This document shows positions 2,983 through 60,275 of a DNA stretch of 64,000 nucleotides, piece by piece. The notes below the pieces were generated by a model. That model did not search any database. It worked only from the letters and a program-made list of their open reading frames with translations, and was not told the DNA's origin. Location of the stretch: sequence record OP292654.1; one strand, written 5' to 3'. A program made the position numbers and the translations under genes. Numbering within the stretch: the first letter of the stretch is position 1; each line of letters opens with the position of its first letter.

Positions 2983-3645
2983 ATGAACTTATTTAAGTTA
3001 GAGCAATATAGAATGGTTCTGGAAGTACTGGAACAAATGAAAGATTGTTTAGACCGTGGCGAGACTTACACTAATGTTAAAGGCAAGCCGTTTAACGTTA
3101 CTCGTCAGTTTGGTATCTGCTGGCACGTATACGCCCATACGCCTAACCAAAAGATGACAGGGATCGGCACTGACTTTATGTGTGGTGCGTTCGCTGAAAT
3201 GGGGTTAGATTCTGCCTATCCGGTAGAGGGACAAAGTACTATCAATCGCGATCATATGCGTATTGCGTTCACTGCTCAGCGTAACTTGTACGACGACGAC
3301 ACGATCCACGGTGCGAACCGGATCAAGCTGGTGGACCGTCTGATTCAGTACTACCGCGAAAAGATGGAAACGCCTGTTAGTGAAACAATGTACCAGCATT
3401 ACTATAACCTTGCGTTATCAGAAATGAAATGGCGTGATACAGCTAACGAGGCTGTTTGGGATGTTCTGGATTTTGAGAACAATCAGATCTGGCCTAGCCT
3501 GGCCGCCTTGATTGTACAGGAAGATCCAACCCTGGGGGAAGTACTGGAAAACTCTGATATTAACTACCCGGACGATCTGACACTGGAAAACATTGTCACG
3601 ACTAACTTACAGGAACGGATTCAGGAAGCGTTAGAAAAGTTATAA
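2983..3645 (+). CDS. Hypothetical early protein
   Basis: GAGGAG SD, upstream promoter. Confidence 0.85.
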   Translation: MNLFKLEQYRMVLEVLEQMKDCLDRGETYTNVKGKPFNVTRQFGICWHVYAHTPNQKMTGIGTDFMCGAFAEMGLDSAYPVEGQSTINRDHMRIAFTAQRNLYDDDTIHGANRIKLVDRLIQYYREKMETPVSETMYQHYYNLALSEMKWRDTANEAVWDVLDFENNQIWPSLAALIVQEDPTLGEVLENSDINYPDDLTLENIVTTNLQERIQEALEKL

Positions 3646-52540: not shown

Positions 52541-52742
52541 TTTTAGTCTCCTAAGAAAGTTATATAATTATATTCAGTATTTATTAAGATACCGAAAACT
52601 AGCTATTGCTATTAATATTTACTTTTGAAGCACAAAAAGTGCTTGACGATCTCAAAGAAATTTGATAGTATCATATTGTTCTAGCAAATTGGCGACCAAA
52701 AAACTTGGAACGCCATTGATTTTTATGCTATAATGTACACAT

Positions 52743-52789
52743 CAAGGCGTTGTAGCCTTGTCTCAATAATGACTAAGGGAGTCTTAGAA
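52743..52789 (+). promoter_or_regulatory. Shared two-hairpin leader of the NMNAT-Nudix gene
   Basis: CAAGGC-GTTGTA-GCCTTG then CTAAG-GGAGT-CTTAG, 2 nt before ATG. Confidence 0.7.
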
Positions 52790-53857
52790 ATGAAAAACGA
52801 AAAAGTTTATGTATATATTGGTCGTTTCCAAATGGCACATGCTGGTCATGAAGCTACCATTAAACACGCATTAGAAAATTCAGACCGTTTGGTAATCCTG
52901 GTTGGTTCTTCTGATATGGCACGTGATTCAAAGAATCCGTTCACTTTCGATGAACGCAAGCAAGTACTGGATGCTATGTCTAGTCGTTTAGCACAAGCAG
53001 AATGGGCTAAAGGACGTTCGGTTAAGGTTAATATCCTTCCAATCCACGACTACGTATATAACAACAGCAAATGGCTGATGGAAGTTCATGAGCAAGTTAA
53101 ATCTGTAACTCAGAGTGAAAATATTTTCATTACTGGTTGTCAGAAAGAAGCTGACTCAAGTACTTTCTACCTGAACTTCTTCCCTCAGTGGAATCAGGAT
53201 TTTATTGCTGAAGAAAAAGCTGATGAAGCAACTATTAACAGTACTGCTATGCGTCAACAATTCTTCAGTACTAAACAAGTTCCAGAAAGTCTGCCAGAAG
53301 AAACTAAAGAGTTTCTTGAGAAGTTCATGAAAACTAAACCAATGGTTTTCGATAATCTGATTGGCGAATTCAACTTTGTACAACGTTATCGTTCAGAGAT
53401 GAAAGAAAAACTTCCATATGACAATATCCCGTTCTTGACGGGTGACGCATTGGTAATCTGTGCTGGTCATGTACTGTTGGTTAAGCGTCGCACTTTCCCA
53501 GGCAAAGGTTTATACGCACTTCCTGGCGGTTTCTTTGACGCATGGCAAGACAAAGATCAGGTTCAAACCGCACTACGTGAACTCAAAGAAGAAACAAAGA
53601 TTGATGTTCCGATGAAAGTACTTGAAGGTTCAATTCGTGAAAGTATGGAATTCGGTGATTTCAATCGTTCACTTCGTTGGCGTATCATTACTCGCTGTGC
53701 TCATATCCAGCTTCAGGACAATACTTTACCAAAAGTAAAAGGTTCTGATGATGCTGAAAAAGCATTCTGGATGCCGCTTGGTGAGTTGGTTAAGAATCGT
53801 GATAAATTCTTTGAAGACCATTTGAGTATCATTGATACTTTCCTGGGAATTCTGTAA
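52790..53857 (+). CDS. Bifunctional NMN adenylyltransferase/ADP-ribose pyrophosphatase (NadM-Nudix, NatV-like)
   Basis: YIGRFQMAHAGH, KNPFTFDER, NSTAMR; Nudix LPGGF...ALRELKEET, GSDDA. Confidence 0.92.
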   Translation: MKNEKVYVYIGRFQMAHAGHEATIKHALENSDRLVILVGSSDMARDSKNPFTFDERKQVLDAMSSRLAQAEWAKGRSVKVNILPIHDYVYNNSKWLMEVHEQVKSVTQSENIFITGCQKEADSSTFYLNFFPQWNQDFIAEEKADEATINSTAMRQQFFSTKQVPESLPEETKEFLEKFMKTKPMVFDNLIGEFNFVQRYRSEMKEKLPYDNIPFLTGDALVICAGHVLLVKRRTFPGKGLYALPGGFFDAWQDKDQVQTALRELKEETKIDVPMKVLEGSIRESMEFGDFNRSLRWRIITRCAHIQLQDNTLPKVKGSDDAEKAFWMPLGELVKNRDKFFEDHLSIIDTFLGIL

Positions 53858-53904
53858 GAGTTTTGGAGTACTGAAAGGTACTCCATTTTAATTGAGAGGA
53901 TGAT

Positions 53905-54423
53905 ATGTTATTTTGTCAACCAGAACGCTTTTATAAAGAAATGAAATATATTTCTGATAATCGTGAAAGTTTTATCAAAAAAATCTGCTTGACAGAATAC
54001 CAAATACCTGATAAGATTGAATATATTGATCCAATTCAATATCTAATTAAGATGGTTCTGAGTGAACCAGAAACCGAAGACCCGAATCGTGTATTCGCAC
54101 TACGAACTTATGGCACAAATAATGGTCTAGAACCGCATAAGAGTGATCGAATGGCACAAACGTACTTTGGTCAGATAGAACGTGGCAATTTATTCATATC
54201 TCGAAGTGTTTCGGATATTGTAGTACAGGATAATGGTACAATTCATTACCGGGACTCTGATGAATTTGGTGATGAATACGAGTTTTCACTCGACGCAATT
54301 GCGTTGAACCTGTACAACAATCCATATGATATACCTTCATATATTAGGCTAAATCCTAATATGTTTGAACCTAATAATTTATTGGCTAAAATACCAGTAA
54401 ATTTACTACAGCATTTGGTATAA
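53905..54423 (+). CDS. Hypothetical protein
   Basis: GAGG SD. Confidence 0.75.
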   Translation: MLFCQPERFYKEMKYISDNRESFIKKICLTEYQIPDKIEYIDPIQYLIKMVLSEPETEDPNRVFALRTYGTNNGLEPHKSDRMAQTYFGQIERGNLFISRSVSDIVVQDNGTIHYRDSDEFGDEYEFSLDAIALNLYNNPYDIPSYIRLNPNMFEPNNLLAKIPVNLLQHLV

Positions 54424-54432
54424 ACCAAATAA

Positions 54433-54483
54433 TGAAAGCGTTGTAGCTTTCACTTAAACTTAATAACTAAGGGAGTCTTAGAT
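54433..54483 (+). promoter_or_regulatory. Shared two-hairpin leader of the NAMPT gene
   Basis: TGAAAGC-GTTGTA-GCTTTCA then CTAAG-GGAGT-CTTAG, 2 nt before ATG. Confidence 0.7.
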
Positions 54484-55998
54484 ATGACTATTACTAACAA
54501 AAATTTTAATGACGTTATTGATTTCTCTGATAACGTAAACTTTATCCTCAACGTTGACTCGTATAAAACTGGTCACGGCTTTATGATGAAAGAGGGCGTA
54601 GTAGCTCTTGAAAGTAACATCATTGCTCGTAAACCGTCCAAGTACGCAACGCACGTTGTAATGGCTGGTCTTCAGTACTACATTCAGAAGTACTTGAACA
54701 TCACTATCACACTTGAGGATATTGACGAAGCTGAACTTGAAACCGAACAACGTGGCGACGATTTTGATCGCGGTTTTTGGGAACATATTCTGGAAGTACA
54801 CGGCGGTAAAATTCCTGTACATATCCGTGCTGTTCCTGAAGGTACTGTAGTTCCGGTTGGTTGCCCTTTGGTACGTTCTTTCAGTACTGATCCTCGTGTT
54901 TGCGTTATCGCAAGTTATATCGAGACTCAGTTACAACGTGCTGTATGGTTCCCTACAACTGTAGCAAGTAATGCTCGTAGCATTAAAGAGTTTTTGGCAG
55001 ACACAATGGAACGTCATGCGGGGCATCGCTTCGTGGACTACCATCTTCACAACTTCGGTGATCGCGGTGCTTCCAGCTATGAATCAGCAATTCTGGCGGG
55101 TATGTCTCACGCAATGATCTTCAGTGGTTCTGATTGTCTGTCTGCGAACCGTTACATTAAAAAGTACTTCCACACTGATAAAGCATATCTGAGTTCCGTA
55201 ACTGCTTCTGAGCATAGTGCTACCTGCTCTAACTCTGACGCAGACAAACGCGATGACTTCAATATGGCTCTGAAAATGGTTCGCCTGTGGGAGAAAAAAG
55301 TTGATGCGTATATTGCTAAAGGTTCAGTTGGTGTTCCACCAATCGTTTCAGTAGTAATTGATACGTATGATGCTTACCGCTTCGTTCGTGAATTCATCGG
55401 TACTCGTCTGAAAGAGATGATCCTTGAAATCGCGGCTCGTTGTCCTGGTGCTAAACTTGTCATGCGTCCAGATAGTGGTGATCCAACTACTATGCCTATT
55501 GAGATCCTGGATATTCTGGCAGATAAATTCGGTACTACTGTGAATGCTAATGGCTTCAAAGTACTGCCAAGTTTCATCGGTGTAATTCAGGGTGACGGTA
55601 TCAACGAAGACAGCATTCGCCAAATCGTTGCGAATCTGGAAGCTAAGAACTACTCTATTGAGAACCTTGTGTTCGGTATGGGTGGTAAACTGGTTCATCC
55701 AGAAAAAGGTCGCGATACCTATTCATTCGCAATGAAAGGTTCTGCTCAGCAATTGGCTGACGGTACTTGGGAAGATCTGTTCAAAGACCCAATTACCGAT
55801 GTGGGTAAACGTTCTCTGCGTGGTCGCGTGACTACCTATGAATGTACTAATTCCCACAAGATCATTGCTGAACGCATTGAGCTTCAAGAAGTCAACCACT
55901 TCATTAAAGATATGATGGTTGATATGTACATTAACGGTGAGATTTTCAATCTCAGTAACTTCGATGAAGTCCGTGAACGTGCTAACAAAGGTTTGTAA
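54484..55998 (+). CDS. nadV: Nicotinamide phosphoribosyltransferase
   Basis: DSYKTGH, LHNFGDRG, ASEHS, DTYD, RPDSGDP, IQGDG, FGMGG. Confidence 0.93.
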   Translation: MTITNKNFNDVIDFSDNVNFILNVDSYKTGHGFMMKEGVVALESNIIARKPSKYATHVVMAGLQYYIQKYLNITITLEDIDEAELETEQRGDDFDRGFWEHILEVHGGKIPVHIRAVPEGTVVPVGCPLVRSFSTDPRVCVIASYIETQLQRAVWFPTTVASNARSIKEFLADTMERHAGHRFVDYHLHNFGDRGASSYESAILAGMSHAMIFSGSDCLSANRYIKKYFHTDKAYLSSVTASEHSATCSNSDADKRDDFNMALKMVRLWEKKVDAYIAKGSVGVPPIVSVVIDTYDAYRFVREFIGTRLKEMILEIAARCPGAKLVMRPDSGDPTTMPIEILDILADKFGTTVNANGFKVLPSFIGVIQGDGINEDSIRQIVANLEAKNYSIENLVFGMGGKLVHPEKGRDTYSFAMKGSAQQLADGTWEDLFKDPITDVGKRSLRGRVTTYECTNSHKIIAERIELQEVNHFIKDMMVDMYINGEIFNLSNFDEVRERANKGL

Positions 55999-56052
55999 TA
56001 TTTTAGGAGAGCTTCGGCTCTCCTTTCTTTTAATTTACCGAGAGTAACACAT

Positions 56053-58566: not shown

Positions 58567-59358
58567 ATGAATCTCGAACGCTTTCTAGCGAATAAAGGCC
58601 GACCGCGACTGGTATTCGCAACTGGTGCAGGACTATCTAAAGAATCTGGTATTCAGACTTTCCGTGATGCCGCCGGAGAAGGCTTGTGGGATGGTGTAAG
58701 TGTCGATACTGTTTGTAACATTGCGACATTTGACATTAACTATGATCTGATTCATCGTTTCTATAATCAGATGCGTGTTGGTCTGAAAGACTATGAACCA
58801 AATATTGGTCATGAGTTTATCGCACGTATGCAACAAATCTATGGTGATGATAATGTGATTCACATTACTGCCAACGTAGATGATCTGGCTGAACGTGCTG
58901 GCGGTACTGCGATGCACGTACACGGTTTCTTAACAGAAATTGTAGAACCGTATAGTACTAATAGTCCGAACTACGAAGTTCGTGACATTGGTTATACTGA
59001 ACACACACCAACCAAAGGTGTTATTTCTAAACCGAATATTGTAATGTTCGGTGAAACCTTCTGGTTCAAAGATGGTGTTCGCAAGAACATTTATGATGAT
59101 CTGTATAAAGTACTGGACAGTTTAACTGCCGAAGATACAGTAATTGTAATTGGTTCTTCTGATACTGTAATTCCGTGGAGCATCTATGCGGGTCTTGCGA
59201 CCAATGCTGAAGTCGTTAATGTGAATCCAGAAGCACATGATAACGATGACTACTTTACTTATAACTTGTACCAGCCAATTACTGAGGCTGTTGAACTTCT
59301 TGAACAGTACGCACATCAGCGTTTACATGTTCCTGATTTTACCAAAGAAGAATACTAA
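58567..59358 (+). CDS. Sir2/CobB-family NAD-dependent deacylase
   Basis: TGAGLSKESGIQTFR, TANVDDL.ERAG, HVHG, KPNIVMFGE. Confidence 0.9.
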   Translation: MNLERFLANKGRPRLVFATGAGLSKESGIQTFRDAAGEGLWDGVSVDTVCNIATFDINYDLIHRFYNQMRVGLKDYEPNIGHEFIARMQQIYGDDNVIHITANVDDLAERAGGTAMHVHGFLTEIVEPYSTNSPNYEVRDIGYTEHTPTKGVISKPNIVMFGETFWFKDGVRKNIYDDLYKVLDSLTAEDTVIVIGSSDTVIPWSIYAGLATNAEVVNVNPEAHDNDDYFTYNLYQPITEAVELLEQYAHQRLHVPDFTKEEY

Positions 59359-59369
59359 GGGTACTCAAA

Positions 59370-60275
59370 GTGGCTATGTATCAAGAAATCCCATTCGGCA
59401 CACGTTCTGAACGTTATGATTGTGTGTTCGTATGGATTTATGCGAAAAACTGTACTCCATATGCGAACTATCCGTATAATGACATTCCTAACGTGAGCTT
59501 AGTACTGTCAGAACTACGTTATGATGGTTTGCTGGGGGCAGTAGGTGGAATGGTAGAACACGATGATCCAAATCTGGAAATCGCTGTTATGCGTGAAGCC
59601 AAAGAAGAAATTGATTATGATTTACCAATTGAACGCTTACAGCCGTTGGTAAGTTATAAAAATACCGTAATCGGTTCCCACAATCATGCGTTTTCTTTAG
59701 AAGTATCTTATGAAGAACTTCTGGAGATTCGTAACAACGCACATAATGGCGTACACTTTGCTGCGGAAAATGCAGGTGTGAACTTATTACATACGTGTCG
59801 TTACCTCAAGGGTAACAAGATTGAATGTGGATGGAACATTCTGTTAGAACAAAACTTTGTCGGTACTGCTAAGATGGAACTGATGAAACTTGTTCGTACA
59901 AAGAATCTGCTAATTGATTACGTGGATGACGATAAAACTGACACTTCATATAAGATGTTCTTAGATGATCTTCGTGATGCTGAAAAGTACTATCCTAATG
60001 AAGAAATGGTAGTTTGTCGCACGTATAAAGAAGCAGTTGATTACGTCAATGAACATGGTTTGCCGTCATTTATCTCTTTCGACCACGATTTAGGTGATAC
60101 CGAAAATGAAGATGAAGAAACTGGCTATACCTTTGCGAAATTTTTAGTCGAGTACATGATGGACAATCAAATTGGGAAACCATTTGAATATCATGTTCAT
60201 AGTGCTAATCCAATCGGTGCGATGAATATCGTTGCTTATCTGGATAACGCATTTAAATTTATTCGGAGCTTATAA
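59370..60275 (+). CDS. Fusion: N-terminal Nudix hydrolase plus C-terminal cyclic-phosphate-processing receiver-like domain
   Basis: GGMVE...MREAKEEI; FLDDLR...ISFDHDLG...TGY...HSANPIG. Confidence 0.8.
   Translation: MAMYQEIPFGTRSERYDCVFVWIYAKNCTPYANYPYNDIPNVSLVLSELRYDGLLGAVGGMVEHDDPNLEIAVMREAKEEIDYDLPIERLQPLVSYKNTVIGSHNHAFSLEVSYEELLEIRNNAHNGVHFAAENAGVNLLHTCRYLKGNKIECGWNILLEQNFVGTAKMELMKLVRTKNLLIDYVDDDKTDTSYKMFLDDLRDAEKYYPNEEMVVCRTYKEAVDYVNEHGLPSFISFDHDLGDTENEDEETGYTFAKFLVEYMMDNQIGKPFEYHVHSANPIGAMNIVAYLDNAFKFIRSL

Follow-up and report, generated by a model that had tools for sequence, protein, structure and literature searches.

In the genome of Xanthomonas phage XbC2, a GAP32-like jumbo phage of 367,901 bp, two NAD-salvage genes are each preceded by a short leader with two hairpins, the second of which presents the Shine-Dalgarno (SD) sequence in its loop, and this arrangement raises the question of whether a dedicated RNA element controls both genes. 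The first gene, natV, encodes a bifunctional NMN adenylyltransferase/Nudix ADP-ribose pyrophosphatase (NadM-Nudix; Pfam domains CTP_transf_like PF01467 and NUDIX PF00293), and the second, nadV, encodes a nicotinamide phosphoribosyltransferase (NAMPT; Pfam domains NAMPT_N PF18127 and NAPRTase PF04095). Nampt and Nmnat together constitute NARP2, as the original prediction had assumed in agreement with the literature, and with this pathway phages can withstand NAD-depleting defences (Thoeris, DSR and SIR2-HerA among them). Because NARP2 costs PRPP and overproduces NAD+, and because the cloned KVP40 operon proved toxic in E. coli, tight control of the pathway is plausible; the NARP2 study does not address pathway control. 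The window analyzed here is a stretch of 64,000 nt from sequence record OP292654.1, within which the locus comprises the following features:

52705–52734, + strand: sigma-70-like promoter inferred from a consensus scan (TTGGAA, 18 nt, TATAAT, with TG extension)
52743–52760, + strand: natV hairpin A, 6-bp stem CAAGGC/GCCUUG with loop GUUGUA, −8.7 kcal/mol
52761–52772, + strand: natV linker, 12 nt, A/U-rich, single-stranded
52773–52787, + strand: natV hairpin B, CUAAG-GGAGU-CUUAG, with the SD GGAG (52778–52781) in its loop
52790–53857, + strand: natV, bifunctional NadM-Nudix enzyme (GenBank XbC2_100)
53864–53885, + strand: terminator-like hairpin followed by a T-run, 3′ of natV
53905–54423, + strand: ORF of 172 aa between natV and nadV (orf172), with no leader motif of its own
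54433–54452, + strand: nadV hairpin A, 7-bp stem UGAAAGC/GCUUUCA with loop GUUGUA, −8.2 kcal/mol
54453–54466, + strand: nadV linker, 14 nt, A/U-rich
54467–54481, + strand: nadV hairpin B, the same 15-mer as in natV, with the SD GGAG at 54472–54475
54484–55998, + strand: nadV, NAMPT (annotation XbC2_102)
56005–56024, + strand: terminator-like hairpin 3′ of nadV, likely the end of the unit

Both leaders were recovered with every feature, and at every position, that had been described for them. Hairpin B is followed by AA and the ATG at 52790 in natV, and by AT and the ATG at 54484 in nadV, so that its 3′ arm forms the spacer between SD and AUG, and 25 of the 27 nt around hairpin B are common to the two copies. 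RNA folding returned the two hairpins as the minimum free energy structure of both leaders. Hairpin A is stable in natV and nadV alike (z about −4), whereas hairpin B is no more than marginally stable (−2.2 to −3.3 kcal/mol, z about −1), and the support for hairpin B therefore comes from covariation in relatives rather than from its energy. An intrinsic terminator was rejected as an identity for hairpin A, which has no U-run 3′ of it on the + strand. The two genes are indeed separated by a terminator-like hairpin and an unrelated ORF; orf172, whose stop codon lies 9 nt upstream of nadV hairpin A, yielded no Pfam domain and no PDB relative, and its PHROGs match (phrog_25832) is of unknown function. 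This ORF is syntenic in Mimasvirus and Eneladusvirus, and in a RaK2-like contig its position is taken by an unrelated 341-aa zinc-finger ORF.

Within XbC2 the motif proved to be confined to these two genes. The hairpin B 15-mer occurs exactly twice in the window, and allowing up to three mismatches gave four matches against 1.04 expected, a number reached in 0 of 100 shuffles. Over the complete 367,901-bp genome no further copy with zero to two mismatches was found, and a class-2 covariance model gave scores of 69 and 64 bits to the two leaders and 17 bits to the next match. The claim that no other gene carries the motif thus extends from the window to the entire phage, where exact, mismatch and covariance-model scans gave two copies only and did not place the motif before many unrelated genes. 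The XbC2 pnuC locus (nadR-pnuC, genome positions 264872–266717) did not match covariance models R1 or R2. A trans-acting antisense RNA was rejected, as a search of both strands of the whole genome for the 15-mer with up to three mismatches yielded no complementary copy.

The same architecture was found before NAD genes in other phages and in bacteria. Both hairpins were present in 132 of 170 unique natV/nadV leaders drawn from IMG/VR loci on diverse phage contigs, and the exact 15-mer occurred 19 times in IMG/VR, always identical and each time 1–4 nt upstream of a NatV or NadV ATG. Cultured phages with the architecture include cyanophage (Synechococcus phage) B23, Rhodobacter phage RcXuper and Xanthomonas phage LucasX, and in two phage contigs the two-hairpin leader also precedes nadA. 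A covariance model (R1) built from distant phages only, without any GAP32-group sequence, ranked 54433–54482 first and 52743–52788 second when run on both strands of the XbC2 genome, although the E-values (0.36 and 0.41) are weak by themselves. R1 also matched cultured phages outside its training set, namely B23, RcXuper, LucasX (natV and nadV) and RSP15 (nadV), as well as chromosomal nadM-nadV operons of Marinobacter, Marinicella, Burkholderia and others, and its matches lay on the same strand as the gene downstream. The family thereby spans natV, nadV and nadA in several phage families and nadM-nadV in gamma-, beta- and epsilon-proteobacteria.

The scans placed it mostly before NAD genes. 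A strict hairpin B was present in 116 of 150 NAD-gene leaders as compared to 16 of 1527 other SD-preceded ATGs (1%) on the same contigs, and 10 of these 16 had hairpin A as well. In a looser scan the clear cases outside natV and nadV preceded nadA or small ORFs heading natV operons; Pfam, PHROGs and PDB returned only "unknown function" for small ORFs downstream of the motif in other phages. A sequence-only pattern gave 26 matches in 2.9 million viral contigs, 21 of them directly before NatV or NadV, and in a metagenome pattern scan 28 of the 34 matches with real hairpins preceded the same two genes. Some natV/nadV genes had no hairpin A, namely those of Miller and Aeromonas phage 25, both T4-like Straboviridae, and those of RAS14, Astolliot and phiN3; in Miller, RAS14 and Astolliot a B-like hairpin alone was seen. 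In two further loci, L027 and L030, nadV lacked hairpin B. The real unit is far wider than a single-phage motif and includes chromosomal bacterial nadM-nadV operons, and the XbC2 leaders appear to be a local variant of a widespread and apparently undescribed RNA leader that marks NAD genes.

Comparison of these leaders showed which parts are conserved. The loop of hairpin A reads A-N-R-G-A in most lineages, as AUAGA in 83 leaders and as AGAGA in 13, whereas the GAP32/RaK2 group that includes XbC2 has G-N-N-G-U-A (GUUGUA or GAUGUA in 22); since the XbC2 group departs from the majority sequence, the A hairpins of the two classes can be called homologous only provisionally. In class 1, whose 100 sequences come from different phage families and bacterial phyla, positions 1, 4 and 5 of this loop never varied, and neither did GGA at positions 1–3 of loop B (100/100), where GGAG (65%) and GGAU (25%) are the commonest cores. 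The linker is A/U-rich and variable in sequence and length (4–19 nt), hairpin B ends 0–4 nt upstream of the AUG, and 34–46 nt consistently separate loop A from the AUG. The covariation anticipated by the original prediction was found in both stems, in distant phages as well as in bacteria. Five of the six pairs of the natV hairpin A stem show double changes among relatives. In an alignment of 100 sequences (A4), 90.6% of cells were paired versus 52.3% in shuffles, double changes occurred at all 13 pairs, and the covariation score was 0.90 versus 0.18 when shuffled (0 of 500 shuffles) and 0.09–0.17 in slid controls; a hairpin detector had picked the leaders for alignments A3 and A4 in advance, which partly ensures their inner pairs but neither the outer pairs nor the independent searches. 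An unbiased ranking by mutual information placed predicted base pairs in all of its top 11 column pairs, and RNAalifold gave the same fold for the XbC2 group.

Hairpin B, which had been called identical in the two leaders, is invariant throughout the GAP32/RaK2 group, but its stem covaries freely elsewhere. Together with the 25 shared nucleotides in XbC2, this local uniformity could be read as a by-product of duplication or gene conversion, with the motif being a mobile promoter/stem-loop cassette for recombination that has no gene-specific role. T4-type phages do contain such repeated cassettes (PeSLs), which lie in hyperplastic regions as numerous, nearly identical copies upstream of variable ORFans (PMC4122927), and the XbC2 leaders resemble them in that a promoter is followed by a stem-loop and the arrangement is repeated within a phage genome. 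The leaders differ from PeSLs in having only two copies per genome, always tied to the same two defined genes, and in keeping their architecture with wholly different stems across unrelated phage families and on bacterial chromosomes. In class 1, moreover, the B arms of natV and nadV were no more alike within a genome (2.14 of 5 positions) than between genomes (2.41 of 5), on which basis two ideas were rejected for class 1, concerted evolution and recognition of both stems of a genome by a common sequence; concerted evolution does not explain the family. An origin as a recombination by-product is consequently considered very unlikely.

Inverted repeats upstream of genes may also act as DNA, as operators for a dimeric transcription factor such as NrtR or NadR. 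NrtR is an ADP-ribose-responsive, Nudix-related regulator that controls transcription through 21-bp double-stranded palindromes with conserved arms (GT-N7-AC), and its regulon in Synechocystis (nadM-nadV, nadA, nadE) nearly coincides with the set of motif-bearing genes (PMC2330246). The two systems thus share target genes and pathway-specific control, and they occur side by side in the Marinobacter and Marinicella loci, where divergent NrtR genes (NUDIX plus NrtR_WHD) adjoin nadM. A strand-asymmetry test comparing G-U with A-C cells was uninformative and did not favour RNA (29 versus 30, with inner pairs pre-selected and the A-C cells probably coming largely from a recurrent internal loop in one hairpin A subclass). 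Against operators at the DNA level, the arms vary even between the two XbC2 copies (CAAGGC versus UGAAAGC), the conserved part is an asymmetric centre on the strand of the gene and at a fixed distance from the ATG, the centre of hairpin B is the SD itself, and the XbC2 annotation includes no protein that combines NUDIX with a winged helix. With variable arms, a conserved asymmetric centre and no GT-N7-AC in either hairpin, the NrtR operator was rejected, and a DNA operator of any kind appears extremely unlikely.

A structured leader could still contribute to expression without sensing anything. According to this explanation, a constitutive cassette would have moved horizontally with its genes and been kept for a suitable, fixed expression level, with hairpin A as a 5′-terminal or intercistronic stabiliser against RNase E and 5′-end-dependent decay, the A/U linker as an S1 enhancer, and hairpin B merely displaying the SD in its loop. 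In XbC2 the extended −10 promoter has a predicted start at about 52741, 2 nt upstream of natV hairpin A; TGnTATAAT lies 8 nt upstream of hairpin A in the natV leaders of Kaldavass, GAP32, CBB, BF and a RaK2-like phage too, and TATAAATA or TATAAT was found in 42 of 70 natV leaders, most often 3–9 nt upstream of hairpin A. The stability of hairpin A and the unpaired SD in hairpin B suit such a cassette, as does the tiny conserved core, which consists of a pentaloop with its closing pair plus the SD loop, the conservation of which could be explained by the ribosome alone. Mutual information over all column pairs revealed no alternative pairing, pseudoknot or loop-loop covariation, and hence no expression-platform switch is visible; an anti-SD in the 3′ arm of hairpin A was seen by eye in a subset of leaders and is not general. 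A stabiliser, however, could do its work with any loop, yet loop A is fixed at positions 1, 4 and 5 throughout class 1; 57 of 62 nadV copies are intercistronic and have no promoter-like box upstream; and a generic good ribosome binding site would be expected before other genes as well, rather than being restricted to one pathway. On balance, a constitutive cassette of this kind is regarded as unlikely.

We therefore favour a dedicated cis-regulatory leader RNA of NAD-synthesis genes that would act at translation initiation, a reading to which we assign a probability of roughly 0.7. A structured, covarying and pathway-restricted element that recurs across distant phages and bacteria has the comparative signature of a pathway-specific cis-regulator, and that the leader is dedicated to the two NAD-salvage genes is borne out in XbC2, where these are its sole copies, and by its travelling with natV and nadV. 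The original interpretation as an operator or switch of the NAD pathway is thus partly supported. In the mechanism we propose, the 30S subunit would initiate only when hairpin B opens, since its 3′ arm is the SD-AUG spacer, and the weakness of hairpin B would allow it to open unaided. A partner recognising loop A, and perhaps loop B as well, may stabilise or bridge the hairpins and would set the translation rate of each cistron separately, whereby natV and nadV would become coupled, and this partner would report NAD status. It could be a small molecule (NAD+, NMN or ADP-ribose) that acts directly on a minimal riboswitch, an assignment we regard as tentative, or possibly a protein, either universal or encoded by the cassette, such as NatV itself. 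Two general hallmarks of riboswitches, a covarying structured RNA in 5′ leaders and an association with one pathway across distant taxa, are present. It is conceivable, if doubtful, that the leader represents a third, minimal class of NAD-related riboswitch sensing NAD+, NMN or ADP-ribose directly; equally tentatively, such a riboswitch might control how nadM/natV, nadV and nadA are translated in bacteria and, in phages, the genes of the NARP2 counter-defence pathway.

The leader common to natV/nadV, phage nadA and bacterial nadM-nadV offers a concrete and testable control point of about 50 nt. Binding of a metabolite would make it a new class of riboswitch for a central cofactor, as well as the first regulatory sensor known from a phage counter-defence pathway, and phages would then start NAD reconstitution upon the metabolite change caused by NAD-depleting defences; with a protein as its partner, the leader would instead define a new RNA operator, transferred horizontally together with the genes it precedes. 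In practice, the motif can also serve to recognise members of the NAD regulon, and it flags the phage unknowns phrog_1843, phrog_33851 and phrog_12218 as candidates for NAD-related functions.

Comparison with known RNAs gave no direct counterpart for the leader. Rfam 15 at permissive thresholds produced no leader match in the XbC2 region, six distant phage loci or a bacterial locus, and the Rfam model of the nadA motif did not match at E≤10 (52600–54600 and the Marinobacter locus) or E≤1 (the six distant loci). The literature searched held no paper linking nadV or nadM to an RNA motif or riboswitch, and two catalogues of candidate structured RNAs list no nadV- or nadM-linked motif. Two riboswitches are known to act in cis before NAD-pathway genes, as the leader would: NAD+-I (nadA motif), found upstream of nadA in Acidobacteria with two tandem bulged-stem aptamers, and NAD+-II (pnuC motif), found in Streptococcus, which consists of P1, an internal loop and P1a with a 3-bp pseudoknot to the ribosome binding site and represses translation by tying up the SD (PMC9841397). 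Unlike in NAD+-I, the two hairpins of the leader are dissimilar and hairpin B is a plain 5–6 bp stem with the SD in a pentaloop; unlike NAD+-II, the leader has no signal of a pseudoknot or long-range pair, no copy at XbC2 pnuC and no Rfam match.

Short hairpin-plus-SD operators are also used by T4 (gene 43, gene 32, RegA), where a phage protein shuts off translation, each such operator being tied to a single phage lineage and the protein of that lineage. RegB cleaves GGAG, more rarely GGAU, within SD sequences, and these are the two commonest cores of loop B. In contrast to these T4 operators, the leader also resides on bacterial chromosomes with no phage context. Leaders bound by CsrA/RsmA likewise have two hairpin loops tens of nucleotides apart, one of which contains the SD GGA, and are repressed by occupancy of the SD. 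The GGA in the SD hairpin loop is shared with them as an automatic consequence of placing an SD in a loop, but loop A (AUAGA, AGAGA or GUUGUA) is not ANGGA, and only Ralstonia phage RSP15 combines AGGGA with ACGGA. A cyanophage and alpha-proteobacterial phages also carry the motif, and CsrA is not known to be general in the lineages concerned.

The guanidine-II riboswitch (mini-ykkC) is built from two small hairpins with equivalent, kissing ACGR tetraloops and is associated with guanidine export genes. The loops of the NAD leader are not ACGR, differ from one another (ANRGA or GNNGUA in hairpin A, GGAGU in hairpin B) and do not covary mutually, the SD forms the loop of the second hairpin, the genes downstream serve NAD synthesis, and there is no Rfam match. 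Overall, the leader nevertheless resembles guanidine-II in its two small hairpins with covarying stems, conserved loops and closing pairs and a short variable linker, placed at the ribosome binding site where translation would be controlled.

The two-hairpin leader in front of natV (NMNAT-Nudix) and nadV (NAMPT) of Xanthomonas phage XbC2 is a structured, probably cis-acting RNA specific to NAD-synthesis genes. XbC2 (OP292654.1, genus Mimasvirus), to which the region is 100% identical, has a genome of 367,901 bp, on which window and genome coordinates are the same. DNA searches identified Erwinia phage Kaldavass (94%) as its nearest relative. The Cronobacter, Pectobacterium and Serratia phages GAP32, CBB and BF follow at ~82%, and RaK2-like Klebsiella phages are more distant.

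Features of the natV-nadV locus of XbC2 (window coordinates)
52705-52734, sigma-70-like promoter with extended -10, predicted start ~2 nt 5' of natV hairpin A
52743-52760, hairpin A of the natV leader, loop GUUGUA
52773-52787, hairpin B of the natV leader, a 15-mer with GGAG in the loop, ATG 2 nt past the stem
52790-53857, natV, Pfam cytidylyltransferase-like and NUDIX domains
53864-53885, terminator-like hairpin 3' of natV
53905-54423, 172-aa ORF, phrog_25832, unknown function
54433-54452, hairpin A of the nadV leader, loop GUUGUA, stem unlike the natV copy
54467-54481, hairpin B of the nadV leader, same 15-mer, ATG 2 nt past the stem
54484-55998, nadV, Pfam NAMPT_N and NAPRTase domains
56005-56024, terminator-like hairpin 3' of nadV

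All features of the shared architecture described in the original prediction were found, with linkers of 12 nt (natV) and 14 nt (nadV) between the hairpins, and RNA folding of both leaders returned precisely hairpins A and B. At -8.7 and -8.2 kcal/mol hairpin A is stable; hairpin B is marginal at -2.2 to -3.3 kcal/mol, an energy that does not separate it from shuffles. The genes are indeed split by a terminator-like hairpin (53864-53885) and an unrelated ORF, for which Pfam and PDB searches returned no domain or relative. This ORF keeps its synteny in Kaldavass, GAP32, CBB and BF and is replaced in a RaK2-like contig by a 341-aa zinc-finger protein (DUF4379/CapR).

The further claim that the motif precedes no other gene of the phage was upheld when the whole genome was scanned on both strands. 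The hairpin B 15-mer occurs twice, with no additional copy at 1-2 mismatches, and with a covariance model of GAP32/RaK2-group leaders (R2) the natV and nadV leaders scored 69 and 64 bits, against 17 bits for the next-best site. XbC2 encodes further NAD- or ADPR-related proteins (window 58567-60275; genome 260095-261021 and 264872-266717), namely a Sir2-like protein, a Nudt16-like Nudix fused to cREC_REC, an ADP-ribosylglycohydrolase, and PnuC with a NadR-like protein consisting of NMNAT and kinase, in which an HTH domain was not detected. The genome scan found the motif before none of these genes, and with only two copies genome-wide it is not a generic ribosome-binding site of XbC2.

Xanthomonas is G+C-rich. 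The host given in the record, Xanthomonas vesicatoria, therefore looks odd for a phage with a G+C content of 37.5%, whose closest relatives by DNA search are phages of Enterobacterales (Erwinia, Cronobacter, Pectobacterium, Serratia, Yersinia). Within its large tRNA region, XbC2 also has a tRNA annotated 'tRNA-Pyl' (genome 292074-292147; 28074-28147 of L010, L-numbers denoting the DNA loci analysed), whose anticodon CTA would make it an amber-suppressor type.

An exact search for hairpin B in 2.9 million IMG/VR contigs returned 11 DNA stretches, nearly all in jumbo-phage contigs of 345-378 kb, and each of the 19 occurrences of the 15-mer preceded a gene for a NatV or NadV homologue, 1-4 nt 5' of its ATG. 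Within this GAP32/RaK2 group, loop A is constant as GNNGUA while the hairpin A stem is wholly variable (CAAGGC, CAAAGC, GAAAGC, GACAGC, GCCGCU, AGAGAAC, AGAGAGU), with compensatory double changes at five of six pairs and 98% of cells paired; RNAalifold gave the same fold. Hairpin B does not vary except in the RaK2-like natV leader, where its arms are exchanged (CUUAG-GGAGUA-CUAAG), itself a compensatory change.

A wider family was assembled from proteins, using NadV and NatV loci of IMG/VR, and the leader plan was kept upstream of both genes in phages whose enzymes are just 35-50% identical to those of XbC2. Here, the stem of hairpin A is free to vary and carries an ANRGA pentaloop (AUAGA in 83 leaders, AGAGA in 13; AGUGA, ACAGA and AAAGA rarer), for which the closing pair is usually G-C or C-G. 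Hairpin B combines an unconstrained 4-7 bp stem with a GGAGU, GGAUU, GGAGC or GGAAC loop; the ATG follows within 0-4 nt, and the loop A-to-ATG distance stays within 34-46 nt. The XbC2 leaders are a lineage-specific variant of this family, in which loop A reads GNNGUA and hairpin B is fixed; homology of the two hairpin A forms is plausible.

Recurrence with covariation in other phages, which the original prediction set as a check, was observed: both hairpins were present in 132 of 170 unique natV/nadV leaders, and an alignment of 100 sequences (A4) showed double changes at 13/13 pairs. Paired cells amounted to 90.6% (52.3% in shuffles) and the covariation score was 0.90 (0.18 shuffled, 0/500 shuffles; 0.09-0.17 in slid registers), although preselection of A4 leaders by a hairpin detector partly guarantees the inner pairs, leaving outer pairs and separate searches unaffected. 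Unbiased ranking of column pairs by mutual information put predicted base pairs in all of the first 11 places; no signal beyond the two helices, and no alternative switching structure, was seen over the leader alignment. The strand test on leader stems gave 29 G-U against 30 A-C. In one subclass of hairpin A (e.g. L112:2604-2648, L047:3941-3986) an internal loop recurs with the form CAAAG(N)G ... C(N)C(C/U)GAG (A4 columns 1-7, 13-19), built from a 3-bp inner stem, three unpaired positions and an outer C-G pair; it may reflect additional tertiary structure or a surface for recognition.

A covariance model built from A4 (R1), which holds no GAP32-group sequence, ranked 54433-54482 and 52743-52788 first and second across the two strands of the XbC2 genome taken together (18.7 and 18.4 bits, next 14.9). 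On 828 kb of IMG/VR loci every R1 match lay on the strand of the gene 3' of it, and 129 of 146 (E up to ~0.03; many are training loci) were directly 5' of NatV/NadV. Of the cultured phages left out of training, Synechococcus phage B23 (Kyanoviridae), Rhodobacter phage RcXuper and Xanthomonas phage LucasX had matches 5' of natV and nadV alike, and Ralstonia phage RSP15 had one 5' of nadV. In bacterial genomes, matches preceded nadM and also the nadV beside it in Marinobacter, Marinicella, Burkholderia, Thiorhodococcus, Neptuniibacter, Methylophilaceae and Sulfurovaceae, and three inspected loci had ordinary chromosomal neighbours (LysR, AraC, aminotransferase). The leader is common to phages of several families and to bacteria, and evidently travels with the genes. 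A sequence-only pattern (GGATAGACC, 12-26 nt, AAAGGAGTTT) lay directly 5' of NatV or NadV in 21 of 26 IMG/VR matches; metagenome matches were mostly chance hits without hairpins, but where genuine hairpins were present (34 matches), 28 preceded NatV/NadV. No matching family was found in Rfam 15 for window positions 52600-54600, six distant phage loci or the Marinobacter locus, nor any nadV or nadM RNA motif in the searchable literature.

Strict hairpin B was present at 116/150 NAD-gene leaders versus 16 of the 1527 remaining SD-preceded ATGs on that DNA; hairpin A accompanied it at ten of the 16. Other motif-bearing genes, from a looser scan and the model search, were nadA and small unknown ORFs opening natV operons. 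The nadA genes (quinolinate synthase, Pfam E ~1e-81 to 1e-83) lie just 5' of natV in two uncultivated phage contigs (L065:1914-2804; L113:1834-2745), so in some phages this control seems to extend to a step of de novo NAD synthesis. The small ORFs, directly 3' of the motif, fall into recurrent families, phrog_1843 (L066:2268, L100:2335, L355:600), phrog_33851 (L115:2096, L117:846) and phrog_12218 (L098:2673, L126:2415), with further cases at L112:2648 and L121:2645. Because they have the leader in common, their products may serve NAD-related functions, or one of them may be the regulator. ORFs in L277 and L335 resemble phrog_33851 by eye. Some natV/nadV genes have no hairpin A; leaders of Citrobacter phage Miller (L214), RAS14 (L216) and Astolliot (L133) show a B-type hairpin (stem, GGAGU or GGGGU, stem, AUG) without it. 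Hairpin B may have come first, or be the more general of the two.

As the 3' arm of hairpin B forms the SD-AUG spacer, initiation should require hairpin B to open. Its inner three pairs are mostly A-U (73-96%), retained even in the inspected G+C-rich bacterial leaders, and it appears to be kept weak; hairpin A is strong. Conservation resides in loops and spacing rather than stems, and stems of two copies within one genome are no more similar than those across genomes, suggesting a partner that reads loops and geometry. By stabilising the hairpins or bridging them, such a partner would tune how strongly each cistron is translated, and natV and nadV would be coupled despite the intervening terminator-like hairpin and unrelated ORF. 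Since the motif ranges from cyanophages and phages infecting alpha-, beta- or gamma-proteobacteria to epsilon-proteobacterial genomes, there are three candidates for the partner: a small molecule, a cell component that is universal, or something encoded by the cassette. Direct metabolite sensing by the leader has a probability of roughly 0.3 in our estimate, and a protein operator is a possibility of about equal standing. A constitutive stabiliser or ribosome-binding cassette is rather unlikely and ranks below both: the conserved core is small and the ribosome alone could explain conservation of the SD loop, but natV copies usually lie just 3' of a promoter-like box (T4-late TATAAATA or TATAAT) whereas nadV copies are mostly intercistronic, which argues against a pure 5'-end stabiliser. 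KVP40 is an experimentally studied phage with NARP2, the NAD-rebuilding pathway formed by natV and nadV.

In bacteria, the same genes are regulated through NrtR operators; these are palindromic, conserved in their arms, and share a GT-N7-AC core (PMC2330246), whereas the leader motif has variable arms and a conserved asymmetric centre. A divergent NrtR gene (L154:1639-2475; L143:1663-2475) adjoins nadM, a few tens of bp away, in two of the three inspected bacterial loci (Marinobacter and Marinicella), where the operon would combine DNA-level (NrtR/ADPR) control with an RNA leader. RSP15 (L129, Ackermannviridae; 2440-2500 and 3522-3566) has loop A sequences AGGGA and ACGGA, which fit the CsrA/RsmA consensus ANGGA, while the AUAGA of most leaders does not. 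PeSL-type cassettes, in turn, are multi-copy and not gene-specific (PMC4122927), in contrast to the leader motif with its two copies in XbC2, at natV and nadV.
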